Part shown: positions 15,945 to 33,650 of the stretch, piece after piece
Layout of the letters: each line of letters opens with the position of its first letter
Position numbering within the stretch: position 1 is the first letter of the stretch
Assembly (NCBI GenBank): GCA_002269645.1
Contig: NIVC01001186.1
Coordinates: forward strand, 1 to 64,000
Source: Macrostomum lignano
Taxonomy: Eukaryota
Direction of reading: 5' to 3'
Length of the DNA stretch: 64,000 nucleotides
Notes under the pieces: generated by a model
The model's input: the letters and a program-made list of their open reading frames with translations, nothing else
What the model was told of the DNA's origin: nothing
Databases searched by the model: none
Made by a program: the position numbers and the translations under genes

Positions 15945-17285
15945 ATGTCAGCAGACACCAGTCCAGACTCCCAGCATCGTAATGCCTCATCTCGCAGTCC
16001 GCTAGCCCAGTTCGAGGCCGCTGTACAAGTTGTTGACAGTCTGCCGCGCGGCTCATCTAGCCAAGCGGTTGCTATGCAAGGCTTCAAGCCGTCAACGGAT
16101 TTAATGCTTCGCTTCTATGCTCTATATAAGCAGGCTAGTAACGGTCCCTGCCAGCAGCCAAGGCCGGCGTTCTGGGATCTGATTGGCAAAATGAAATGGG
16201 ATGCCTGGCGCGCGCTAGGCGACATGCCTCGCGAACGCGCCATGCTGGAATATTCTCGCCAGCTTCGCACTGTGATTGAAAGCCTGCCAAACTCGTCTCC
16301 AGCTGTTAGCGGACTGATTGACAAAGTTGCCAACTTCTATAGGCTTGTTGACGATGATGATGATCAGGAGTCTGAGGTTAAACTCGGCCTTTTATTAGCC
16401 AATCGGATTCGATGTCGAAGCGGCGGGAATTTGGATGCAGAATCAGCCGCCGCCGCAGATTTAGATGTCAATTCCAATTTTCTAACGCAATCGTTGCCGC
16501 CTAAAATCACTAGTAGTAGTAGTAATGATAATAGGAATGGCTTTCTAAGAAATAGTCAGCCTAATCCGCGCCGGAGACAAGCGTCGGAAACGTCAGTTTG
16601 GCCTGCGGCGGCGGTAGTGGCGTCAGCTGCTGTCGATCCAGAACATCCCGACCGAGGCGGCGGCGGCAGCAGCAGCAGCAGCAGCGACAATGACGAATTC
16701 TGCGATTCCTACGACAATTTTGTACAGCCGTTTGGTGATGATCAGCCGGGTGACGTCACCGGCGGTCAGCAGCCTTCGACTTCACCTTCATCTGCATCAG
16801 CCGCAGCCGGCGGCGGTCACCAATCAGCTGGGCGTCGTCAAGGTCGTCAGCAGCAGCAGCAGCAGCAACTGCCTTCGGCTTCAAGCTTCGAGAATAGCAA
16901 CGGGTTGTCATGGCAACCGCCGCTGCCGCCGCCGCCTGATCCTACTGGCCGCTCGGCAGCTGCTGCATCGAGCTTCGAACTTGAGCGCGAACTAGTCGGC
17001 CAACTGAGGCACATCCGAGCCGCTCTGGATCGTCTGTCGGGCGATCTTGGACAGATTCACACCCGTCTAGACAGGCTAGAACGAACTAGTCATAAAAGTG
17101 CATTGTCGGACAGCTCCGGCAGTTTCTACTGCTGGTTTCAGCGGTGGCTGTTCAGCGGCAGAGGTGTCGGCGGCTTGTCGGTACCGGCGCTGCTGCTGCT
17201 GCTGGCCTGGCCTGTGCTCGTCCAGCTGCTATGGCGGCTGCCCTGGAGACGGCTGCGACAGAGGAGGGGTCGGTTGGCGCTCTGA
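15945..17285 (+). CDS. ACBD5: Acyl-CoA-binding domain protein of ACBD4/5 type (ACB domain, FFAT-like motif, coiled coil, tail anchor), single exon, 446 aa
   Basis: ACB domain FEAAVQVV..LRFYALYKQAS.GPC...RPAFWDLIGKMKWDAW..LGDM; SSSSSSDNDEFCDSYD; heptad region LRHIRAALDRLSGDLGQIHTRLDRLE; TM LLLLLAWPVLVQLLW with basic tail RRLRQRRGRLAL. Confidence 0.85.
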   Translation: MSADTSPDSQHRNASSRSPLAQFEAAVQVVDSLPRGSSSQAVAMQGFKPSTDLMLRFYALYKQASNGPCQQPRPAFWDLIGKMKWDAWRALGDMPRERAMLEYSRQLRTVIESLPNSSPAVSGLIDKVANFYRLVDDDDDQESEVKLGLLLANRIRCRSGGNLDAESAAAADLDVNSNFLTQSLPPKITSSSSNDNRNGFLRNSQPNPRRRQASETSVWPAAAVVASAAVDPEHPDRGGGGSSSSSSDNDEFCDSYDNFVQPFGDDQPGDVTGGQQPSTSPSSASAAAGGGHQSAGRRQGRQQQQQQQLPSASSFENSNGLSWQPPLPPPPDPTGRSAAAASSFELERELVGQLRHIRAALDRLSGDLGQIHTRLDRLERTSHKSALSDSSGSFYCWFQRWLFSGRGVGGLSVPALLLLLAWPVLVQLLWRLPWRRLRQRRGRLAL

Positions 17286-17360
17286 TCCCTCAGGTGGCTG
17301 GCTGAACGGTCGGTGCGATTATTGGTGAGAATGTGATGACCATGATTCAAAAAAATCATT

Positions 17361-19012
17361 TAAGATTCTGTAATGGTTAGAATTCTAAGAAATCATCCAA
17401 TCAAGATTCTGTAATGGTTAGAATTCTAAGAATTCACCCCAATCAAGATTCTGTGATGGATAGGATTCTAAGAAATCAGTCAAGATTCTGTAATGGTTAG
17501 GATTCTAAGAAATCACTCCAGATTCTGTGATGGATAGGATTCTAAGAAATCACTCAAGATTCTGTGATGGATAGGATTCTAAGAAATCAGTCAAGATTCT
17601 GAGATGGTTAGGATTCTAAGAAATCACTCAAGATTCTGAGATGGTTAGGATTCTAAGAAATCATCCAATCAAGATTATGGGATGGATAGGATTCTAAGAA
17701 ATCATCCAATCAAGATTCTGAGATGGTTAGGATTCTAAGAATTCACCCCAATCAAGATTCTGTGATAGATAGGATTCTAAGAAATCACTCAAGATTCTGT
17801 GATGGATCAGATTCTAAGAAATCATCCAATCAAGATTGTGTGATGGATAGGATTCTAAGAAATCACCCAATCAAGATTCTGTGATGGATCAGATTCTAAG
17901 AAATCACTCAAGATTCTGAGATGGTTAGGATTCTAAGAAATCACTCAAGATTCTGTGATGGATCAGATTCTAAGAAATCATCCAATCAAGATTCTGTGAT
18001 GGATAGGATCCTAAGAAATCACTCAATCAAGATTCTGTGATGGATAGGATTCTAAGAAATCACTCAATCAAGATTCTGTGATGGACAGGATCCTAAGAAA
18101 TCACCCAATCAAGATTCTGTGATGGATAGGATCCTAAGAAATCACCCAATCAAGATTCTGTGATGGATAGGATCCTAAGAAATCACCCAATCAAGATTCT
18201 GTGATGGATAGGATCCTAAGAAATCAGTCAAGATTCTGTGATGGATCAGATTCTAAGAAATCATCCAATCAAGATTCTGTGATGGATAGGATCCTAAGAA
18301 ATCACTCAATCAAGATTCTGTGATGGATCAGATTCTAAGAAATCACTCAATCAAGATTCTGTGATGGATAGGATTCTAAGAAATCACCCAATCAAGATTC
18401 TGTGATGGATAGGATCCTAAGAAATCACCCAATCAAGATTCTGTGATGGATAGGATCCTAAGAAATCACCCAATCAAGATTCTGTGATGGATAGGATCCT
18501 AAGAAATCACCCAATCAAGATTCTGTGATGGATAGGATCCTAAGAAATCACCCAATCAAGATTCTGTGATGGATAGGATTCTAAGAAATCACTCAATCAA
18601 GATTCTGTGATGGATAGGATCCTAAGAAATCACCCAATCAAGATTCTGTGATGGATAGGATTCTAAGAAATCACTCAATCAAGATTCTGTGATGGATAGG
18701 ATTCTAAGAAATCACTCAATCAAGATTCTGTGATGGATAGGATTCTAAGAAATCACTCAATCAAGATTCTGTGATGGATAGGATCCTAAGAAATCACCCA
18801 ATCAAGATTCTGTGATGGATAGGATTCTAAGAAATCACTCAATCAAGATTCTGTGATGGATAGGATCCTAAGAAATCAGTCAAGATTCTGTGATGGATAG
18901 GATTCTAAGAAATCACTCAATCAAGATTCTGTGATGGATAGGATCCTAAGAAATCACCCAATCAAGATTCTGTGATGGATCATGATCAGATTGTAAGAAA
19001 TCACTCAATCAA
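17361..19012. repeat. ~41-bp minisatellite (~40 copies)
   Basis: Unit CAAGATTCTGTGATGGATAGGATTCTAAGAAATCACTCAAT with 37-41-bp length variants. Confidence 0.95.
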
Positions 19013-19407
19013 TATTTTTCGAAGGCCAGAAGCTCACTCAAATATTACTAACATTTTTTAAAATATTCTAAATTAGCCAGTGTTTTCGCCTCGCTTTTTC
19101 AGACTTGGATTGGACAAAAATATTGAGGCTTACACAGACAAGCTTTTGTCGCTCCTACAGTCTCCCTCACAGTGTGGTGTTGCAATGATTCTTAATGTCT
19201 TATTTTAGCCTGACAAAAATACTCTTGTGCTGTCTTTCGTTAATTTGCCTGTAATTTTCCCCGTGTTTTGTACTGCAAATAGCTTTGAGACTGTCCTCAA
19301 AAATGATTTTGTGATTAGCCGATTAAGTCTCTATTCTTCTGTCTCTTGTTTTCTATTGATTTCCGAATCAATAGGTTGTAATTTTTACAACCTTTGAACT
19401 TTTATCT

Positions 19408-19764
19408 CTGCTACCCTCCCTCAGAGTCCTTCATTTGGTAACTGCTACCCTCCCTCAGAGTCCTTCTTTTGGTAACTGCTACCCTCCCTCAGAGTCCTTC
19501 ATTTGGTAACTGCTACCCTCCCTCAGAGTCCTTCATTTGGTAACTGCTACCCTCCCTCAGAGTCCTTCATTTGGTAACTGCTACCCTCCCTCAGAGTCCT
19601 TCATTTGGTAACTGCTACCCTCCCTCAGAGTCCTTCATTTGGTCACTGCTACCCTCCCTCAGAGTCCTTCTTTTGGTAACTGCTACCCTCCCTCAGAGTC
19701 ATTCATTTGGTCACTGCTACCCTCCCTCAGAGTCCTTCATTTGGTAACTGCTACCCTCTCTCAG
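19408..19764. repeat. 34-bp minisatellite (~10 copies)
   Basis: Unit CTGCTACCCTCCCTCAGAGTCCTTCATTTGGTAA. Confidence 0.95.
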
Positions 19765-20349
19765 AGAGTCATTTAGTGTTTCTGCACTAGAGTTGAACCA
19801 TCCAATTTTATGCACTGTCATAATTTAATTTACGATTTCATTTAATTAACTAATTTATGCATAGGTTTAGGTCCCTATAGTATGCGTAGTCAACTTACCC
19901 CGAGAGCTTGTATATTGTAGGTCCTGTAAGGCAAAATCATTTTTCTCAATCATTCAAATCGTATCCATTGGTCTTTTGCGCATAATTTTCAGTATTTCGT
20001 CATGCATATTTTTGTAATTCGTATTAATCCTAATTTAGTACGTGTAATAACAGTATAAAAACGTGGCTAATATGTGATTGATATAATGCGAGATCTATTG
20101 TCATCTAATAGGCTTACACCCCAACCCTGTAATTTCAATATCTATTACTCAACACTTGTGTATATTCGTAGTTTTATGCATCTAAGCGTTTATAAGCTAG
20201 TATAGTGCGTTAACTTTTGTCTGCTGTCATATTCAGAATTATATGTGATTTTATCTCTGTTGATTGTTGTTGGTTAACTATATATACTGTCTTCAAGCGT
20301 TTTTTATAAATTTATTAAAATTCCTGTCAGGTAGGTCAAGTAGTAACGC

Positions 20350-20926
20350 TCAGGATTCAGTGTCAGATGGGTCATTAATAAGTGTCAGGATTTAGTGTCA
20401 GATGGATCATTAATAAGTGTCAGGATTCAGTGTCAGATGGATCATTAATAAGTGTCAGGATTCAGTGTCAGATGGATCATTAATAAGTGTCAGGATTTAG
20501 TGTCAGATGGATCATTAATAAGTGTCAGGATTTAGTGTCAGATGGATCATTAATAAGTGTCAGGATTCAGTGTCAGATGGATCATTAATAAGTGTCAGGA
20601 TTCAGTGTCAGATGGATCATTAATAAGTGTCAGGATTCAGTGTCAGATGGATCATTAATAAGTGTCAAGATTCAGTGTCAGATGGATCATTAATAAGTGT
20701 CAGGATTCAGTGTCAGATGGATCATTAATAAGTGTCAGGATTCAGTGTCAGATGGATCATTAATAAGTGTCAGGATTTAGTGTCAGATAGATCTTTAATA
20801 AGTGTCAGGATTTACTGTCAGATGGATCATTAATAAGTTTCAGGATTTAGTATCAGATGGATCATTAATAAGTGTCAGGATTCAGTGTCAGATGGATCAT
20901 TAAAAAGTGTCAGGATTTAGTGTCAG
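20350..20926. repeat. 35-bp minisatellite (~16 copies) ending ~90 bp upstream of the beta-catenin-like ATG
   Basis: Unit TCAGGATTCAGTGTCAGATGGATCATTAATAAGTG. Confidence 0.95.
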
Positions 20927-21014
20927 CTGCCACTAGTGTCAGAACCCGTTAGATTTAGGTATATTTTTTTGCCACAATAAATTGCATGCCGTCTAATCCA
21001 AAGCTGTCAGCAAC

Positions 21015-24000
21015 ATGTCAACATTTCGGTCTTCTTATCGCGAAGCAACAACGCCTACAGGTGCATCTGCAGCAGCTGGTCCGGTAAACTTCAGCGCCAG
21101 CTTAGATCGTCAGTCGGTTTCCATGGATACGCTGAATAGACAGATGCACAGAGGCAGAGCTGTGAGGGTCAGGCAAGCTCTGTTTCCCGAGACTGTTGGT
21201 GCAGAGGCTGAGCAGATGGCTGGCTTGGAGACTCTCACAAGAGGTCGACGGAGACTGCCAACCAGTGTGCAACAGTTGGCTGAGCCGGCGCAGGTGAGAG
21301 AGTGATAATAAAAATTGATGAGGTTGCACCGGTTGTAATTATAAAACTACTTGACATTTTTTTCTTAAATCTATTTTCGGAATTGTTTTCAAAATCTATT
21401 TTTAGAATCGCCTTTTGTAATCGCCTCCAATCTATTTTTAGGATGGCTCTTCAGTCTATTTTCTTAGAATCGCCTTCTAATCTATTTTTAGAATCGCCTC
21501 CCACATTCTATTTTTAGATTGGTCCTCTAATATATTATAAAAAATCGCCTTCAAATCTATTTTTAGAATCGCCTTCACCAATATAGTTTTTAGAATCGCC
21601 TCCCCAATCTATTTTTAGAATCGCCTCCTCCAATCTATTTTTAGAATCGCCTCCTCCAATCTATTTTTAGAATCGCCTCCTCCAATCTATTTTTAGAATC
21701 GCCTCCTCCAATCTATTTTTAGAATCGCCTCCTTTAATCTATTTTTAGAATCGCCCTACAATATATTTTTAAAATCGCCCTCTTTTCTTTTTTTAAAATC
21801 GCCCTTTAGTCTATTTTTATAATCGTCTTCAATAATTGCTTTTTAATCTTAGATTACATGAGAACATTTCTTTTTTGGAGTTGCCCTGTTTAAAGCCTAA
21901 CCAAAATAACCCTTCTTTAACCCCTTGCTCACGAACCGCCCTCTGCACAATGTACCCTTCTCCCTAATCCCCGCAGATACTTCGCACAGCCGTAGTTAAT
22001 CTGATCAATTACCAAGAGGACGCAGACGTGGCACTGCACGCGGCAGCTGAACTGGCTCGCCTGCTAGGCAGCTCAGATCCGGTCACCTGTCAGCGGGCCG
22101 CCTCCCTGACTCTGCAATTGTCTAAGAAGCAGGCCTGCCGATTGGCATTCGCTGTTCAAGTCGATCTCATTGAGGCCCTACTAATAGTAGTGCAAACTGC
22201 ACAGTCGGTTGAGGCGCTGCGATTCGCTGTTGGCGCCCTGTGCCACATCTGTCAGGCTGAGCAGGGCTGCGCCACTGTTTATCAATGCGGCAGAGTTCGC
22301 GCCGTGCCTGAGCTGCTGCGCTTGTTGGGTGAGGTCACAAACGGCGGATGGGGAGAGGCTGGGAGCTCAGAATAACTACTTAACAGCAGGTGATGAAGGA
22401 GAGAGGCTGAGAGTAGCTACTCAACAGCAGGTGATGAAGGAGAGAGGCTGAGAGTAGCTACTCAGCAGCCAGATGATGAAGGAGAGAGGCTGAGAGTAGC
22501 TACTCAACAGCCAGATGATGGTGAGAGGCTGATCGAGAGTAACTACTTAACAGCAGATGATTGAGGAGAGAGGCTAAGAGTAGCTACTCAACAGCAGATG
22601 ATGGAGGAGAGAGGCTGATCGAGAGTAGCTACTCAACATCAAGTGATGAAGGAGAAAGGCTGATCGAGAGTAGCTACTCAACAGCAGGTGATGGAGGAGA
22701 GAGGCTGAGAGTAGCTACATAACATCAGGTGATGGAGGAGAGAGGCTGAGAGTAGCTACATAACATCAGGTGATGGAGGAGAGAGGCTGAGAGTAGCTAC
22801 ATAACATCAAGTGATGGTGGAGAAAGGCTGATCGAGAGTAGCTACTCAACAGCAGGTGATGGTGGAGAAAGGCTGATCGAGAGTAGCTACTCAACAGCAG
22901 GTGATGGAGGAGAGAGGCTGATCGAGAGTAGCTACTCAACAACAGCAGGTGGTGGAGAAGAGAGGCTGAGAGTAGCTACATAACATCAGGTGATAAAGGA
23001 GAGAGGCTGATCGAGAGTAGCTACTCAACAGCATATGATGAAGGATAGAGGCTGGGAAGGGTCAATATTGGTGCGATAGGTGTAATGTAATCAGTGTTTT
23101 GTATTCATATAACTATATCGCATGTACGATGCCAATGCTGCACAGGTAGCACGGATGTCCGCACCCGGAACTACGCTCTCACCTGTCTGCACCACCTGCT
23201 GGTCCACCTGGAGGAGGCGCGTAACGAAGCCAGGATGGCTTCCGGTGCTCAGGTGCTCTCTGAGCTGCTTCTGAGCATTGTGTCCACCAGCTGGCAGCAA
23301 GCCTCTGTGTCCTCGCCTCCGCCACCGATGTCGCCGCCACTGTCTGCAGCTTCCACAGGTTCCGGTTCGGAAGCTCAGCAGCAGCAGAAACTGATGGCCG
23401 TGTGCATTGACTCTCTGCAGTTGCTGGCTTTTGGTATGCATTTGTGTTGTGATGAGGTATATTAATACATCAAGTACATGCAGGAGGTCTGTGGGCACCG
23501 TTGCGGAACCCTTGTGTTAAGTAATACAAGAATGTTATTATAAAATATTACGTAAGAATAGTTGGATGACGTCACGTCCTTTTCCCGACAGCCAATCAGG
23601 AGAGCAAACTGGTTCTGCTAAGCTGCGGCGCTGTGGACCAGCTGGTTAATTTATTGCTAACAAGTCGTTACGAAAAGCTGCTATTCTCAACTAGTCGCTT
23701 ATTAAAAGTGCTATCGGTTGAGCCAAGCTGCAAGTCAGCCATATTAGCCGCAGGCGGTATTACTGCTCTGGGACGGCACTTGAAATCGACTGGCTCGGAG
23801 AGACTGGTTATGAATGCGCTCTGGACTATTAGAAATCTTAGCGATCAGGTAAAAGTGTTTGACCTGGAACCCTACCCCTTTCCTCTGGAATCTTACCTTT
23901 TTCACCTATAATCCCACCTGTTTCCCTGGAATCCTACCTGTTTCCCCTGGAATCCTACCTGTTTCTCCTGGAATTCTACCTGTTTCCCCTAGAATCCTAC

Positions 24001-26549
24001 GTTTCCTCTTGAATCCTACCTGTTTCCCCTGGAATCTTACCTGTTTCACATGGAATTCTACCTGTTTCTCCTGGAATCCTACCTGTTTCCCTGGAATCCT
24101 ACCTGTTTCCCCTGGAATCCTACCTGTTTCCCCTGGAATCCCACCTGTTTCCCCTAGAATCCTACGTTTCCTCTTGAATCCTACCTGTTTCCCCTGGAAT
24201 CTTACCTGTTTCACATGGAATTCTACCTGTTTCTCCTGGAATCCTACCTGTTTCCCTGGAATCCTACCTGTTTCAATTGGAATCTTAGCTGTTTTACTTG
24301 AAATCCTTCCGGTTTCCCCTGGAATATTTCCTGTTTTCGCTTGAATCCTTCCTGTTTCCCTGGAATATTTCTTGTTTTCGCTTGAATCTTTCCTGTTTCA
24401 CATTGAATCCTACCTGTTTTGCATAGAATCCTACCTGTTTTACATGGAGTCCTACCTGTTTTACATGGAATCCTACCTGTTTCCCTGGAGTCCTACCTTT
24501 TCCCCTGGAATTCTACCTTAAGGATCCCACTTGTCTTAATTTTACCCACCCTAAAACTACAGGCCTTCACACTGAATCAGCCGCTCGATCAGCTTCTAGT
24601 AGACCTAATCGGCCTGTTAGCTTCGCCGGACATCGACTGCGTCACCTGCGCGGCGGGCATACTGTGCAACTTGACCTGCCGAAATCGACGAAATAAATTT
24701 GTTGTCACCTCGTCTGGCGGCGCCGGCGCTCTATCGCTAACTCTCCTAGCCACTCAGGATCGCGAAGAGATTGCCGAACCGTTAATGTGCGCCCTGCGTC
24801 ATATTACTCACGATCATGAACAGGTTAGTAGTGTGTAAAGCATCTTATTGTCGATTTTTATCGAAAACTCAAAAAACATCAGTAAACAGTCTACAACCCC
24901 TTTGAGGAATATAAATAGAGTCGCGTTCTCGGTCCTCTCAATCTGATTGGACGACACGCTGCCGAAGCTTCTGAATCCAGCCAATCTCGTAAATACCATA
25001 TTATTTAGGCTTGCGCAGCTGCCGATGCTGTTCTATCGCACGGGCTGGCCTGCACTCTTGGCGAGCTGCTACATCGGGCAGCTGTCGTTGCCGATGCCAC
25101 CACCGTTGGAGTCGGCGTCAGCGTCGCCAACGACGAGCCAGGAGGTCCCGCTGCCAGTCGGCCGTTGGTGAAGGTCAGTGCTGGCTAGTTGACATGGCAC
25201 CTTTTCTTCTGGATCCTTTCTTCAGCTTTTGTGCTGCTTCATCCTTGAATCTGCTTCTCCGCTCCATCAGTGCTTGAGAATCTGCCTCTCCGCTCCATCA
25301 GTGCTTGAGAATCTGCCTCTCCGCTCCATCAGTGCTTGAGAATCTGCCTCTCCCCGATCTCCGCAGGCCGCTCTGGGCCTCTGCCGGAACCTGTCGCTCC
25401 ACGCTGCCGGCCGCGCCGCCCTCCACGCCGAGTCCGCCCCGGCCGCAGCCTCCGCCATCGCGGCCGCCACTTTGGCTCGCGGCATAGACGCCCTCCTCGA
25501 CGATGCCGGCTCGATAGCGTCTGCTGGCGGCGCCGACGACGGCGTCAGAGCCGAGGAGGTCCTTGAGGCCGCCTTGGCCTGCCTGCACTCTCTTGCCGGC
25601 GGCGCCGACGGCGAGGGCGACGGCGAAACCGACCCGATCGAAGCTCGCCGCCAACGTGACGCCGTAGCAGCCGCGGTGCGCAGCCGGCCGGGCCTGCCCG
25701 ACTCTGTCGCCGAATTGGCCGCCGGCGGCGTTGTCGGCAGCAGCTGCGTCGGTCCGGCTGGCGACCTGCTGGAACGTCTGGCTACGGCGAATGCCGCCAC
25801 TGGTTCAACTTCGGCTACGCTGCAGCGCAGGCCAGCTGTGGAGCTGACGGATGAGCAGCAGCAGCAACGCCATCTCAGCGACAGATCTTCCGTTCTTGAC
25901 GTTCCAGACGTTTCCGTCCGGCCCTACCGATACGGTGAGGAGAACTCCATGCCCCCACTCCAGCCACACACACTGAGAATCGCCCCCACTTCAGCCACAC
26001 ACACTGAGAATCGCCCCCACTCCAGCCACACACACTGAGAATCGCCCCCACTCCAGCCACACACACTGAGAATCCCCCCACACACACTGAGAATCCCCCA
26101 CACACACACTGAGAATCCCCCCACACACACTGAGAATCCCCCACACACACTGAGAATCCCCCACACACACTGAGAATCGCCCCCACACACACTGAGAATC
26201 GCCCCCACTCCAGCCACACACACTAAGAATCGCCCCCTCTCCAGCCACACACACTAAGAATCGCACATAATGATTGGTTAGTTAATGCTTGCACAAAGGA
26301 TGCACACAAAAGTAATAAAAACAACTAATTGGGCCACACGATGCAATTCCGTACTAATATAGAGACATATTTACTCTCGCCGTTTACCCAAAAATTTTAT
26401 AACGCAATTCCGTAGATCCCGAAAGAAGCGGGGCCACTCTACCTGTTAACTATGCTGCTCAGTTGCCGCCTAGCTACCACACCTATCAGCAGGAGCAGCA
26501 ACTGCAGCCAGAGCCGCCGCAGCACTGGTATAACACTGCCAAGATATGA
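21015..26549 (+). CDS. CTNNB1-like: Divergent beta-catenin/armadillo paralogue, 8 exons, 767 aa
   Basis: Exons 21015-21293, 21977-22328, 23146-23433, 23592-23848, 24563-24823, 25009-25173, 25367-25934, 26416-26549 (2304 nt; all GT-AG; phases 0,1,1,0,0,0,1 consistent). Beta-catenin signatures: [139 protein letters not shown]. Confidence 0.9.
21366..21830. repeat. ~26-bp degenerate minisatellite, beta-catenin intron 1
   Basis: Unit AATCTATTTTTAGAATCGCCTCCTCC. Confidence 0.9.
22370..23045. repeat. ~41-45-bp minisatellite, beta-catenin intron 2
   Basis: Unit GAGAGTAGCTACTCAACAGCAGGTGATGGAGGAGAGAGGCT(GATC). Confidence 0.9.
23866..24510. repeat. ~21-bp minisatellite, beta-catenin intron 4
   Basis: Unit GGAATCCTACCTGTTTCCCCT, with an internal longer duplication. 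Confidence 0.9.
25245..25352. repeat. 31-bp repeat (~3.5 copies), beta-catenin intron 6
   Basis: Unit GAATCTGCCTCTCCGCTCCATCAGTGCTTGA; ends ~14 nt before the acceptor at 25366. Confidence 0.9.
25952..26262. repeat. ~22-31-bp minisatellite, beta-catenin intron 7
   Basis: Unit CACACACTGAGAATCGCCCCCACTCCAGCCA and shorter variants. Confidence 0.9.
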
Positions 26550-26997
26550 TATGAATGATTGCTGGCTTACACGTTGACCGTGTGTTTTTTTTTATTGTTG
26601 ACTGTGTACAAGCTCCACATAAATGATTATTCTAAGCCTCTCGTTCATGCATAAATTTTCCAGTTTATGTATATGTTGATACTTAAGATTATGTTTTTTT
26701 AAACTGTGATATTATATAGCCTGTTATCTGTTCTTAAATACTTTTACTAAATGCTATATTAAATCTTGTGATTTAAGAATGAAAGTTTGAAAATTATCAT
26801 TAGCTAAATCCGATTTTAGCGGAATTCTTATTTCATTGTATTTTCTTTTATTGCTAATAATAATGTTTCCAAGCCTGTATCTTCTAATTCTTGCCTTCAA
26901 AATCGTGTTTTTCTAAACTATTATTGTAATTGCCGCATTGATTTCTATCCCAAATTTACACGGACCAAAAAAACTGCCAGGCCATTTATAACGCCCT

Positions 26998-27800
26998 CTC
27001 AACCCCCAAATGTACACTCGCCACTGCCTGGCCAGTTATAACCTCCTCTCTACCCCCAATGTACACTCGCCACTGCCTGGCCAGTTATAACCTCCTCTCT
27101 ACCCCCAATGTACACTCGCCACTGCCTGGCCAGTTATTACCCCATCTCTGCCCCCAAATGTACACTCGCCACTGCCTGGCCAGTTATTACCCCATCTCTG
27201 CCCCCAATGTACACTCGCCACTGCCTGGCCAGTTATAACCTCCTCTCTACCCCCAATGTACACTCGCCACTGCCTGGCCAGTTATTACCCCATCTCTGCC
27301 CCCAAATGTACACTCGCCACTGCCTGGCCAGTTATTACCCCATCTCTGCCCCCAATGTACACTCGCCACTGCCGGGCCAGTTATTACCCTATCTCTGCCC
27401 CCCAATGTACACTCGCCACTGCCAGGCCAGTTATAACCTCCTCTCTACCCCCAATGTACACTCGCCATTGCCGGGCCAGTTATTACCCCATCTCTGCCCC
27501 CAATGTACACTCGTCACTGCCGGGCCAGTTATTACCCTATCTCTGCCCCCCAATGTACACTCGCCACTGCCAGGCCAGTTATTACCCCATCTCTGCCCCC
27601 AATGTACACTCGTCACTGCCGGGCCAGTTATTACCCTATCTCTGCCCCCCAATGTACACTCGCCACTGCCAGGCCAGTTATAACCTCCTCTCTACCCCCA
27701 ATGTACACTCGCCATTGCCGGGCCAGTTATTACCCTATCTCTGCCCCCCAATGTACACTCGTCACTGCCAGGCCAGTTATTACCCCATCTCAACCCCCAA
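26998..27800. repeat. ~49-50-bp minisatellite (~16 copies)
   Basis: Unit AATGTACACTCGCCACTGCCTGGCCAGTTATTACCCCATCTCTGCCCCC. Confidence 0.95.
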
Positions 27801-28606
27801 CACACAATAAACCGCATTATGAGCGCTGGCGCATTGTACTTTTAATGATATTTGCTATGCTGAGTGTTTATTTTTTGTTATATAATCTATTGACTCTGGC
27901 TTGTTTAATAAATCGTGCACATTCCATTCTGCGGTGTTGTGAACTTTTTTGAGAATTAAACATTCCCGTCCAGTTATGGAAACAAGGTTTTGATATTACG
28001 ACGTATTATTGAAATATTTGTTTAAAGTTCGTCTAAAATATTTTATATGTTGGCCGTTATATTTTGGCTGGTACCAAGTGTAACTAATGCGTGTGTTATC
28101 AATTTATTATTTTTATCATTCTCTAATTTTCAAATCAGTTTTTTACCGCCTAGCTATCAATTGCCACACGGAAAAAAACATTCGCCTACTCATGCTACTG
28201 TTTTTCAGTAGGTCGGTAGTGCGTTTTGCTATCTATTTTTGTCTCTGTTAAATTTTATTAATTCTCTTGCACAGCTTGAGTAGTTTAGTTCTATAAATAC
28301 GCGTGTAACTAAATTTAATAATAACACTATTTATCATTAATCATAAACTAATATAGTTGTTTTACTGGTATACTAAAGCTACTATTAGTAGTACAGCTGC
28401 TAAATTAATTAATTAAATTAACAGGTGCAAAAGTTGTTGGTTCCAATCTAAAAGAATTACGTCTTAAAATTTTGTTACTTCTTTGATTGCCTGTGCAAGC
28501 ACGGGTGCTTATATCACGTGGATATGAAAACTATTAAAAGTGGATAAAATATTTACGAACGGGCATCTGCTAAACAGTGCTTATGTATCTGATGTCTTGT
28601 CTTATA

Positions 28607-29012
28607 CCCCAGTGAGCCTTGGCATCTCAGCAATTCCCCCCAGTGAGCCTTGGCATCTCAGCAATTCCCCCAGTGAGCCTTGGAATCTCAGCAATTCCCC
28701 CCAGTGAGCCTTGGCATCTCAGCAATTCCCCTGTGAGCCTTGGCATCTCAGCAATACCCCCAGTGAGCCTTGGCATCTCAGCAATTCCCCCAGTGAGCCT
28801 TGGCATCTCAGCAATTCCCCCCAGTGAGCCTTGGCATCTCAGCAATTCCCCCCAGTGAGCCTTGGAATCTCAGCAATTCCCCCCAGTGAGCCTTGGCATC
28901 TCAGCAATTCCCCTGTGAGCCTTGGCATCTCAGCAATTCCCCTGTGAGCCTTGGCATCTCAGCAATTCCCCCAGTGAACCTTGGCATCTCAGCAATTCCC
29001 CCAGTGAGCCTT
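28607..29012. repeat. ~30-bp minisatellite (~13 copies)
   Basis: Unit CAGTGAGCCTTGGCATCTCAGCAATTCCCC. Confidence 0.95.
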
Positions 29013-29758
29013 GACATTTTTATTTTAATCTTTGGAACTTTCATCGTTCTTAATAGTCGGTTAACTTATTATTGTTAGTAGTATAATTAAAACAATTTTT
29101 TATTAAGTTTCTATCGATTACATCTACATGCAAAACTATAGCGAAACGATAATCGTGAATTCTATTTTTTCTGCCTATCAACTACTATGAGTAGATATTG
29201 CAAAAGCTCAATACTTATTTTTTATAATACCATACATGTACGAGCTATATTGGTATCCATGCAGTGTGCTATGCCAACTTTTCATCCAATGCACTCTCTT
29301 GATACCATTGGAGCATCACGTGCGTAGCCAACGGAGCCAAGCCATCCGGTTTGGTAGAAGATCACTAAAATTGCAGCAATCAAGCACACGTTTGAACCCC
29401 AGTCCAGAGCTTTCAGTGCACTAGATGAGATATTTTCACTGATAAGGAACGCCACGAATTTCTATATTCGTAGCCTCTACATGTACGTGTACGTATTGTT
29501 TGTTGAATTGCGCATTACACCCTCTTTGAACATTGATTATAATATAATGTATTAATGTTCATGCATATGCGAAGTTCAGTTTATTCAAATATATTTCGCC
29601 CAAAAGCAAAGTCACATGAACAGGAGTCTTGGCTACACCGTTTACTGCGTAGCCTCTGCATTCCGTGTCATCGGAGTTGCCGGAACCCTGCAGCTGCATC
29701 AGTTTTGGTTGTAACGCAAAAAATCATCTGTCTCTGATCTGTCTTACAGCTTTGGTGC

Positions 29759-30188
<430 letters not shown>

Positions 30189-30512
30189 TAATTTTTCCTT
30201 TAGTCGTCTGTCTGACATCAAACTTGGGTTATACTCGTAGCTACAGACTTTATAAATAGATTAGATTTTACTAATACAGTTTTTTTCGTTTTATTTTAGC
30301 CTTTCTAGTTTTACAAAATAAGTGTTGTAGAAGAATTCCTTATTTCTAAAGCTGTTTAATAAACCCTAGTAAAATATCTTTCAGTTTAACATAAAGTATT
30401 TAATTTTACTGCAAGATAATCTAGTTATATGCTTGTCCTATGTATTGATATTTAGTCCAAAAAAATTCAATTATATACCAGGTAACTTTAGAATTTCAGC
30501 GCAACTTCTGCA

Positions 30513-33500
30513 ATGAAGCTGAGAACAATCGGGCCGATTGCTACATGCATATTACTTCTAACTGGTACACACGGCAGTAGCGGAAATTCTAACACTACTA
30601 ACAGTAGTAGTGTTGGCTCTGCAGTCGCAAACTGCTATTGCAGCAGAGGGTCGAGAGTCGTTGAAATTTCTCCACGCGACGCTATAGTAGAAATTTCAAC
30701 TCGCTACAATGACTCCAACCAGCCCTTGCCTAGTGGCACGAACTGCAAGTTCGTCATCCCGGGCCGGGCCCATCTGCGGTATTTGATCACCGTTCTCGAG
30801 GCCCACGTGGCAGACGACGCCGCCTACCTTAAAGTGACTGACGGCAACAGGACTCTGCTGCACGACGTCAATCTGCACTTCAGCCGGCGGATGGCTATCA
30901 GCAGCGGCGGCTCCATCTCGGTGAACTTCTGGATGGGCTGGAATAGGCGACCCGAGTCAGGAGGCGGAGGCTACCGGATTCGAATGGAGCGGTTCCGGAG
31001 CCACCACTGCCCGCCGAACTGGACTAAGGCTGCGTGGAGTGCAGAGCAGAAGTTCTGCATCAGCCCTTCATCAGCCGATTTCCTTGGCCTGGTCGCCAAC
31101 GCTACCGCTGTCGCTGATTACGTCACGGCGCAGTACATCTGCAACCGGATGAGAGCCAACCTGCTGATGCCGCCTAAGGTGACAGCTTCTTGGTTTCATT
31201 GCATTGCTTGTAAAAATTTTTTTTTCTAAAATATGAACATTTGATCTGCTTTTAAAGGAACTCTTGCTGTACCCTGAAAAATATTTTAGCTGGCGCCCCT
31301 GGTGCTGGCGCCCATGGTGCTGGCGCCCCTGGTGCTGGCGCCCCTGGTGCTGGCGCCCCTGGTGCTGGCGCCCCTGGTGCTGGCGCCCCTGGTGCTAAAG
31401 CCCCTGGTGCTAAAGCCCCTGGTGCTGGCGCCCCTGGTGCTGGCGCCCCTGGTGCTGGCGCCCCTGGTGCTGGCGCCCCTGGTGCTGGCGCCCCTGGTGC
31501 TGGCGCCCCTGGTGCTGGCGCCCCTGGTGCTGGCGCCCCTGGTGCTGGCGCCCCTGGTGCTGGCGCCCCTGGTGCTGGCGCCCCTGGTGCTGGCGCCCCT
31601 GGTGCTGGCGCCCCTGGTGCTGGCGCCCCTGGTGCTGGCGCCCCTGGTGCTGGCGCCCCTGGTGCTGGCGCCCCTGGTGCTGGCGCCCCTGGTGCTGGCG
31701 CCCCTGGTGCTGGCGCCCCTGGTGCTGGCGCCCCTGGTGCTGGCGCCCCTGGTGCTGGCGCCCCTGGTGCTGGCGCCCCTGGTGCTGGCGCCCCTGGTGC
31801 TGGCGCCCCTGGTGCTGGCGCCCCTGGTGCTGGCGCCCCTGGTGCTGGCGCCCCTGGTGCTGGCGCCCCTGGTGCTGGCGCCCCTGGTGCTGGCGCCCCT
31901 GGTGCTGGCGCCCCTGGTGCTGGCGCCCCTGGTGCTGGCGCCCCTGGTGCTGGCGCCCCTGGTGCTGGCGCCCCTGGTGCTGGCGCCCCTGGTGCTGGCG
32001 CCCCTGTTGCTGGCGCCCCTGGTGCTGGCGCCCCTGTTGCTAAAGCCCCTGGTGCTGGCGCCCCTGGTGCTAAAACCCCTGGTGCTAAAGCCCCTGGTGC
32101 TAAAGATCCTGTTGCTAAAGCCCCTGGTGCTAAAACCCCTGGTGCTAAAGCCCCTGGTGCTAAAGATCCTGTTGCTAAAGCCCCTGGTGCTAAAGTCCCT
32201 TGTGCTAAAGCCCCTGGTGCTAAAGCCCCTGGTGCTAAAGTCCCTAGTGCTAAAGCCCTCTCAGCGGTTTATGAACCGACCAGCCATTAATTCTATTATC
32301 CACATTTGCAATTTTCAGTCCCAGCTCAAGTCAAGGCTCGGGGATCTGCAGAAACTGCTCAACTACAAAGACCTGGTGTGGATCGGCCTGAAGAGCAACA
32401 GCTCAGCTGCTCCCGGCAAAAATCTGTACTGGCTTGACAACTCACAAGAGCAACCGCAACAGTAAGAAGCCACTTATGAATACAAATTAGCTTACAATGA
32501 TTTTCACCTTCACAAAGTCCAATATTTACAACCTTACAATTTACTGTATTAAGTTTTCTTTTGCTGACTTTTCACAATCCCCAACCTTCACAATCCCCAA
32601 CCTTCACAATCTCCAACCTTCACAATCCCCAACCTTCACAATCCCCAAGTTTCACAATCCCTAACCTTCACAATCCCCAAGCTTCACAATCTTCAACCTT
32701 CACAATCCCCAAGTTTCACAATCCCTAACCTTCACAATCCCCAAGCTTCACAATCTTCAACCTTCACAATCCCCAACCTTCACAATCTTCAACCTTCACA
32801 ATCCCCAACCTTCATAATCTTCAACCTTCACAATCCCCAACCTTCATAATCCCCAACCTTCACAATCCCCAACCTTCATAATCCCCAACCTTCACAATTC
32901 CCAACCTTCATAATCCCCAACCTTCACAATACCAAAGATTCACAATTCCCAACATTCATAAACCCTATCCTTCACAACCCCGAAGCTTCACAGTCTTCAA
33001 CCTTCACAATCCACAAGCTTCACAATCCCGAAGCTTCACAATTCCCAACATTCACAATCCCCAACCTTCCTAATCCCAAATCACCCAGAGACCCAGACTT
33101 CCTGACCTGCCGTTCGGGCTACACCTGGTCAGCTGGGTCGGCCTGTCAGTCGGGTGAGCTGTTCGGCCTGCTCCGGCCAACCCCATCAGCCTACCTCCTT
33201 CTGGATCGGCTAAAAGAGCAGCACTACTTTGCCTGCTCAGCGCCCATAGGCGGCACTGATGACTTCTACCCAGTGTGGCTGGAGCAGTCGCTCTTTAAAG
33301 TGCAAGGTGACCCAGCTTCCAAGTCATCAGGAAGTGAATTTAAACAATTTTTCAGTGATAATTTCAGCATCATTGTGTCCGCACTGATGCTCGCTTTGGT
33401 TGTCATGGTATCATTTGGCCTTGCCATGATTTATCGTCCTAGGATTCACAGCGGCATTCCGACTGGTGAACCAGTTCGACCTGTACAGCATCCGCCAGAA

Positions 33501-33650
33501 GAGGTATCCTTAATTGATAATGAAGAAGTTGAAAATCTGGCAGATGAAGAACTCTCAATTAATAACGAAAGTGCAGGAAATGTTATTGACGCCAATCAAA
33601 TTGTTGATATTCATAATACTGTTAGTGATCATACATGTGCTATACAATAA
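30513..33650 (+). CDS. Type I membrane protein: signal peptide, CUB domain, C-type-lectin-like domain, TM helix, acidic tail; 456 aa
   Basis: Exons 30513-31178, 32319-32461, 33089-33650 (phases 0 and 2; 1371 nt). CUB-like: NCKFVIP..YLKVTDG..SSGGSISVNF..GYRIRM. CTLD-like: HCPPNW..FC..AQYICNRMRANLL..VWIGL..YWLD..YFAC. TM: IIVSALMLALVVMVSFGLAMIY. Confidence 0.8.
31289..32258. repeat. 15-bp GC-rich minisatellite filling intron 1 of the CUB-CTLD gene (~64 copies)
   Basis: Unit GCCCCTGGTGCTGGC grading into GCCCCTGGTGCTAAA at the 3' end. Confidence 0.95.
32575..33080. repeat. 16-bp minisatellite, intron 2 of the CUB-CTLD gene
   Basis: Unit CCTTCACAATCCCCAA; runs up to the acceptor at 33088. Confidence 0.9.

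Follow-up and report, generated by a model that had tools for sequence, protein, structure and literature searches.

The window analysed here, positions 1–64000 of the Macrostomum lignano contig NIVC01001186.1 (assembly Mlig_3_7), contains on its + strand an eight-exon gene (21015–26549) with a product of 767 amino acids (aa). To judge from its sequence, this gene, BOX15_Mlig009386g1, is a genuine, conserved beta-catenin paralogue, and its product has no DSGxxS degron for beta-TrCP. Our favoured reading, to which we would give a probability of about 0.5, is that it encodes an adhesion-specialised catenin outside the control of the destruction complex, analogous to planarian beta-catenin-2 and to HMP-2 of Caenorhabditis elegans.

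The gene model was assembled by hand from homology and GT-AG junctions, and matches GenBank PAA71079.1, the annotated product of BOX15_Mlig009386g1, at 100% identity over 100% of its length; all introns of the annotated gene are GT-AG. The Mlig_3_7 annotation was built from RNA-seq-guided transcripts with StringTie/TACO, TBONE, and TransDecoder (PMC5730564), so the exon structure is transcript-supported independently of the hand-built model. The best phmmer match in the PDB is zebrafish beta-catenin (2Z6G, E = 5e-95), the Pfam Arm family is matched at E = 2.6e-15, and the protein has the 12-repeat Arm superhelix of the beta-catenin/Armadillo family, with repeats 11–12 low in both identity and model confidence. 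Exon 1 (21015–21293, aa 1–93) encodes a 47-aa N-terminal tail, a 13-letter motif that begins at R48, and the start of the alpha-catenin-binding helix, and ends ...CAG/GTGAGA. The rest of that helix and Arm repeats 1–2 are in exon 2 (21977–22328, aa 94–211, bounded by GT-AG junctions), repeats 3–4 in exon 3 (23146–23433, aa 211–307), repeats 4–6 in exon 4 (23592–23848, aa 307–392), and repeats 7–8 in exon 5 (24563–24823, aa 393–479). Exon 6 (25009–25173, aa 480–534) carries repeat 9 and a 24-aa Ala/Val/Gly-rich loop insertion that follows it; here, the frame with homology to AQNAVRLHYGL was preferred to that of the longest open reading frame (ORF), 24947–25168. Exon 7 (25367–25934, aa 535–724) continues with repeat 10, to about aa 612, and then with degenerate, Ala/Gly-rich sequence where repeats 11–12 and helix C would be expected, and exon 8 (26416–26549, aa 724–767 and a TGA stop) encodes a Gln/Pro-rich tail.

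The absence of the degron was the core of the original prediction, and it held when the protein and the DNA upstream were scanned. The motif D[ST]G..[ST] occurs nowhere in the 767-aa protein and in no + strand frame between window positions 1 and 49531; nor is there a DSGxxS in the 10 kb preceding either of the two homeologous copies of the gene, and the S37/T41/S45 cascade that belongs with the DSGxxS degron is missing with it. The tail that precedes the 13-letter motif is 47 aa long, as against 89 aa in human beta-catenin, within one residue of the earlier count (about 48 and about 89). In two independent MAFFT alignments, the residues SSY(R) and (E)ATTP flank a gap at precisely the position of DSGIxSG in other animals: exon 1 reads SSYR-EATTP where the canonical sequence is SYL-DSGIHSGA-TTTAP. 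From this arrangement, the beta-TrCP/GSK3/CK1 cassette looks to have been lost through an internal deletion within exon 1, rather than stranded in an exon that was missed. One candidate elsewhere in the protein, STGSGSE (aa 280–286, 23352–23372), fits the relaxed pattern [DEST][ST]Gx(2,3)[STDE]; since it lies in a Ser/Pro-rich, disordered loop, where a chance match is as likely as a phospho-motif, it was not credited as a degron.

A similar arrangement was seen in two proteins annotated as beta-catenin-like, from Helobdella robusta (P0007) and Adineta vaga (P0034), both of which have SY, a gap at the DSGIxSG site, and TT/TAP; the A. vaga protein also has the F253N replacement described below. 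A small deletion of this kind may have removed the degron repeatedly, in several lineages, or these two may be gene-model artefacts.

Downstream of the tail, the residues through which beta-catenin contacts its partners are largely kept. In the human reference used for the comparison, Y142, F253, K312, K435, R469, and H470 are at their literature positions. The alpha-catenin-binding helix is 57% identical to human residues 90–148, and its hinge NYQED (aa 104–108, 22007–22021) includes Y105, the equivalent of Y142. Retention of this hinge and of the groove lysines in QESK and RNK had been pointed out previously and is borne out by the alignment, in which K312 (23606–23608) corresponds to human K312 and K437 (24695–24697) to K435. 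In the protein's own numbering, the residues retained are T83 and Y105; K292 and, in exon 4, K312, K335, K345, W384, R387, and N388; N428, K437, R471, and H472 in exon 5; K534, the last residue of exon 6; and N542. Those of the groove correspond to human K292, K312, K335, K345, W383, R386, N387, N426, K435, R469, H470, K508, and N516, so that K312, K435, N426, R469, H470, W383, and R386, on which assignment of a cadherin/TCF/APC groove was based, are all conserved.

Three positions of interest are changed relative to human beta-catenin: F253, a hot spot for Axin and TCF, is Asn (N219, 23169–23171), D162 is Ser, and Y654 is Thr. There is also a 34-aa Ser/Pro-rich insertion (aa 253–286, 23271–23372) in the repeat-4 loop that precedes K292. 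In an AlphaFold2 model, the predicted local distance difference test score (pLDDT) exceeds 90 through most of aa 110–575, apart from short drops at the two loop insertions (to ~53 over that in repeat 4), and is below 50 after aa 656. All Foldseek matches of this model are beta-catenin or plakoglobin, with target-normalised template modelling (TM) scores of 0.75–0.85 to beta-catenin crystal structures.

The C-terminal part is where the protein departs most from its relatives. When 1.84 billion representative proteins were scanned exhaustively with HMMER, the closest relative proved to be another paralogue from M. lignano, P0002 (BOX15_Mlig026881; 445 bits), with canonical beta-catenins next at ~330 bits; P0002 itself scores 552 bits against canonical beta-catenins and 448 bits against the gene described here. 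Identities to human beta-catenin are comparable in the two paralogues over the alpha-catenin-binding region (57% here vs. 50% in P0002), repeat 1 (42% vs. 40%), and repeats 3–9 (40–57% vs. 42–66%), and then diverge: 23% vs. 35% in repeat 10, 13% vs. 39% in repeat 11, 17% vs. 60% in repeat 12, and 10% vs. 56% in helix C. P0002 thus keeps F253, repeats 11–12, and helix C, and has no repeat-4 insertion. With 10% identity in helix C and low model confidence beyond aa 656, helix C and the C-terminal transactivation region could not be recognised here. The protein ends in HWYNTAKI, a remnant of the canonical ...WYDTDL, and with no Ser or Thr at position –2 the class-I PDZ ligand is lost.

Taken together, these features would suit a catenin working at junctions. 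With the degron deleted and F253 replaced by Asn, the protein would be neither recruited to nor marked by the Axin/GSK3/beta-TrCP machinery; with repeats 11–12, helix C, and the tail degenerate, it would not transactivate through its C-terminus; and with the alpha-catenin helix and groove kept, it could bridge cadherin tails to alpha-catenin. Its origin would lie in a duplication within the Macrostomum lineage. The original prediction had proposed a Wnt-insensitive, constitutively stable protein, acting either in adhesion or as a competitor for TCF. The first two properties would be expected from the sequence, and F253N and the loss of repeats 11–12, helix C, and the C-terminal tail point in the same direction; by sequence, the two modes of action are indistinguishable.

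The closest functional analogy is with the flatworm beta-catenin-2 (adhesion) class, defined by the absence of GSK3 sites and a conserved alpha-catenin binding motif (PMC5643146). The M. lignano protein has both features, although not the C-terminal PDZ-binding motif that also characterises the class. Smed beta-catenin-2 (ABW79874) likewise has no GSK3/beta-TrCP sites and keeps the alpha-catenin region and the K312/K435 groove, but it retains helix C (PEEYR...L), Y654, and, according to the literature, the C-terminal PDZ motif, all three of which are lost here. F253 is replaced in both proteins, by Glu in Smed beta-catenin-2 and by Asn in M. lignano, and a further likeness, S425C (in LCNLTC), is found in three members of the class. 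Outside the flatworms, C. elegans HMP-2 is a degron-less beta-catenin paralogue dedicated to adhesion, and its structures (PDB 4R10/4R0Z) are matched at E = 1e-37. The nematode representatives in our trees also have no DSGxxS; they stem from an independent duplication in another phylum, however, and those compared keep the C-terminal ...W[YFC]DTD[LV] end.

Several observations weigh against an adhesion role. With Thr at Y654 and the contact surface of repeats 11–12 for the cadherin N-terminal regions degenerate, the protein may bind cadherin less well. The groove residues are used by TCF and APC too, not by cadherin alone, and so do not discriminate among these partners. Unlike planarian beta-catenin-2, the protein has no C-terminal PDZ ligand. 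P0002 also has an alpha-catenin helix and could cover adhesion alone, and the AlphaFold2 model was computed from a shallow alignment of 20 sequences. Finally, because DSGxxS is missing from all of the M. lignano paralogues, its absence says little about the turnover of this copy in particular.

Another possibility, which we consider doubtful, is that the protein is a constitutive decoy for TCF (or one independent of APC and Axin): stable, nuclear, and transactivation-dead, dampening the helix-C-bearing paralogue much as planarian beta-catenin-4 would if relieved of Wnt-regulated turnover. The TCF-contact residues K312, N428 (N426 in human), K437 (K435), R471/H472 (R469/H470), and K534 (K508) are all kept, neither helix C nor the C-terminal region survives, and there is a precedent in the C-terminally truncated planarian beta-catenin-3/4, which inhibit beta-catenin-1 through TCF (Su et al., 2017, PMC5643146). 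These resemble the M. lignano protein in having lost the transactivation region while keeping the TCF/cadherin groove, and planarian beta-catenin-4 also keeps alpha-catenin binding, to which the conserved helix would correspond here. On the other hand, planarian beta-catenin-3/4 retain GSK3 phosphorylation sites and bind beta-TrCP and Axin (PMC5643146), whereas the M. lignano protein has these sites deleted, a C-terminus that is degenerate rather than truncated, and Asn at F253; it shares with that class the loss of transactivation and not the retention of GSK3 sites. The alpha-catenin helix, moreover, is its best-conserved non-repeat segment, and a purely nuclear decoy would have no need of it.

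Whether the gene is maintained can be judged from its copies in the genome. Three syntenic, near-identical copies were found in M. lignano, a recent polyploid, with all ORFs intact and the same gene order in all three loci (a Dph6-like gene, an ACBP-domain gene, the catenin gene, and a 460-aa gene). Between the window copy and one homeologue (locus L002), there are 24 synonymous and seven non-synonymous coding differences (omega, the ratio of non-synonymous to synonymous rates, 0.10). Exon 1 accounts for seven of the synonymous and none of the non-synonymous ones, and the C-terminal part (aa 481–767) for six and two, respectively (omega 0.12). The homeologues differ by two indels, of one and four codons, both in frame. 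Their introns are ~5–15% diverged in the parts that can be aligned (~2% in intron 6), and can be of quite different lengths (193 vs. 794 nt for intron 6, 481 vs. 1333 nt for intron 7). This is the pattern of a constrained coding gene, the odd C-terminal half apparently included, with the qualification that a synonymous divergence (dS) of 0.04 between homeologues gives a selection test of low power.

The same low power tempers the case against a neofunctionalised or decaying duplicate, one that has partly lost its catenin partners and whose Ala/Gly-rich C-terminal half and Ser/Pro-rich insertion have a new role or none. Repeats 10–12 are at chance-level identity, there are two large low-complexity insertions, and a sister paralogue, P0013 (BOX15_Mlig034493), is more eroded still, with no N-terminal tail, a K335N replacement, and only 40% identity in the alpha-catenin region. 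Low omega in the gene as a whole and in its C-terminal part, three intact copies separated by in-frame indels only, and the retention of groove and alpha-catenin residues nonetheless make such a duplicate improbable.

The last alternative concerns the 5′ end. The ATG at 21015 is preceded by an in-frame TAA (20994–20996) and an AG dinucleotide (21009–21010), both where the original prediction had placed them, within a putative short 5′ untranslated region (20990–21014, + strand). Upstream of it is a TATA-like element, GGTATATTTTTTTGCC (20958–20973, + strand), a presumptive core promoter, which alignment shows to be kept in all three homeologous copies; in L002 it reads TATATTTATTT, with one substitution in the T run. 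The annotated coding sequence of the L002 homeologue (P0016, beginning VYSEAVSKM...) is 5′-partial, starting 24 nt before the ATG and running co-linear with the genome through the AG, and the TATA-like element is ~25–30 nt upstream of this annotated 5′ end. The TAA of the window is TAC in L002, where the frame remains open for 18 further codons upstream of the annotated start; since P0016 is 5′-partial all the same, the annotated transcript must begin at about that point. There is no AG immediately before this end, and it is therefore not a trans-splice acceptor.

Further upstream, a 35-bp minisatellite (20350–20926, 16.5 copies by Tandem Repeats Finder) adjoins the promoter and occupies most of the space available for an upstream exon, and with two other arrays (17362–18980 and 19408–19766) it makes up most of the interval back to the end of the ACBP gene at 17285. 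A tblastn search with eight canonical degron-bearing N-termini found no degron-like matches in the 10 kb upstream of each of the three homeologous loci (L001, L002, and L003), and one of positions 17000–31000 with canonical N-termini and with repeat 11–helix C of human beta-catenin and P0002 found no hidden exons and no other frame coding for the missing parts, only exon 1 itself and repeat-to-repeat echoes. The original prediction had named an upstream coding exon with DSGxxS as the finding that would count against it; none was seen upstream in the three loci. The AG does lie 4 nt before the ATG, with the frame open from 21011, as an unannotated or alternative first exon spliced to it would require, but that such an exon carries the degron, leaving the degron-less form as an annotation artefact or one of several isoforms, is very improbable given the co-linear L002 5′ end that reads through the AG, the TATA-like box ahead of it, the minisatellite-filled interval, the motif and tblastn negatives, and the position of the deleted-degron flanks (SSY...ATTP) within exon 1.

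The other M. lignano paralogues were compared in the same way. The N-terminus of P0002, MASYEVRQYTTTTTSRTST (L004 10002–10060), has no DSGxxS, the Asp-Ser-Gly having been replaced, although T11, S15, and T19 keep a four-residue spacing like that of S37/T41/S45. As in the window gene, lineage-specific motifs are present and a TATA-like box precedes the ATG (here TATAAA, ~50 nt upstream), and there is an in-frame TAA at –12. P0013 has only ~6 residues before its RAARLQQAFFPD motif (L005 10001–10060). A tblastn search of 10 kb upstream of P0002, comprising ~7 kb of intergenic space and reaching into the neighbouring gene, found no degron exon, nor did one of the 10 kb upstream of P0013. A DSGKDSG string upstream of P0013 (L005 9100–9935) was set aside: it is the translation of a 20-bp minisatellite (...RDSGKDSGAQG...), which contains stops and is not in frame with the coding sequence. 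DSGxxS is thus missing from the annotated forms of all three M. lignano paralogue families seen. An apparent fourth relative, the 70%-identical P0041, is the same gene with frameshifts, as predicted from an older assembly.

Neighbour-joining (NJ) trees (200 bootstraps, two taxon sets) place the three M. lignano paralogues in one clade with 99–100% support, and within it BOX15_Mlig009386g1 as sister to P0013 with 100%. Long-branch or composition artefacts are possible in trees of this kind, but the lineage-specific motifs common to all three indicate that the Macrostomum clade is real. The flatworm beta-catenin-2 class, represented by Smed-bcat2 (ABW79874), Hymenolepis, Cichlidogyrus, and one unnamed sequence, is likewise a single clade (99–100%), and the M. 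lignano trio groups with it at only 76% and 58% in the two taxon sets. A labelled planarian beta-catenin-1 from Bdelloura (P0290, with DSGINS) falls outside the trio; a DSG-bearing clade (P0065 and relatives) was considered as planarian beta-catenin-1, but the label was not confirmed by homology search, which returned only metagenome proteins. The trees covered no labelled beta-catenin-3/4 sequences.

The comparison with flatworm beta-catenins that the original prediction had called for therefore upholds the gene as a paralogue within that family, weakly allied to beta-catenin-2 (58–76%), and provides no one-to-one planarian counterpart. Its analogy with planarians, where signalling, adhesion, and inhibition are divided among paralogues, stands as a functional likeness and fails as orthology, since the trio forms a clade of its own apart from planarian beta-catenin-1. 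As far as these sequences show, the division of labour in Macrostomum evolved separately from that among planarian beta-catenin-1 to -4.

Other features of the window include a single-exon ACBP-domain gene 3.7 kb upstream of the catenin gene (15945–17285, + strand), encoding 446 aa with a long low-complexity tail, and upstream of this a Dph6-like (diphthamide synthase) gene. Downstream is the 460-aa gene (~30500–33650), which has no Pfam match. Minisatellites with periods of 21–49 bp are found in the upstream intergenic space, in five of the seven introns, and in the 3′ flank; besides the three arrays already described, they lie at 21419–21830, 22369–23054, 23856–24518, 25247–25367, 25951–26264, and 26973–27950. 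The 31-bp repeat of intron 6 abuts the acceptor of exon 7. A (CTGT)n-type microsatellite at 29740–30230 gives rise to spurious ORFs of 165–191 aa on both strands (...SVCLSVCL... and ...DRQTDRQT...).

Adhesion catenins with no degron (planarian beta-catenin-2, nematode HMP-2) were known before, as were catenins unable to transactivate (planarian beta-catenin-3/4), so BOX15_Mlig009386g1 adds a further case rather than a new principle. Its combination of losses is unusual, with both the degron and helix C gone and the alpha-catenin site kept, and it is of comparative value as another instance in which signalling and adhesion were divided through an independent duplication, here in a flatworm that branched early and is amenable to genetics. 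A more interesting lead is that DSGxxS is missing across the family. All three families seen lack it in transcript-based models, the helix-C-bearing P0002 included, and there is no degron exon in the ~7–10 kb upstream of their starts; that M. lignano has no canonical DSGxxS beta-catenin at all is still rather unlikely, and a fourth, canonical one might have been collapsed into a cluster with the beta-catenins of other animals in the libraries searched. The point bears on the interpretation of published RNA interference (RNAi) phenotypes. Beta-catenin RNAi in M. lignano targeted “three homologs” through common sequence (PMC12435804), which we read as the three homeologues of one gene. If a canonical beta-catenin is indeed lacking, Wnt control of beta-catenin in M. 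lignano would have been rewired away from beta-TrCP recognition, for example to transcriptional induction, and adhesion or decoy activity would fall to BOX15_Mlig009386g1 in a three-way division of labour that evolved independently.

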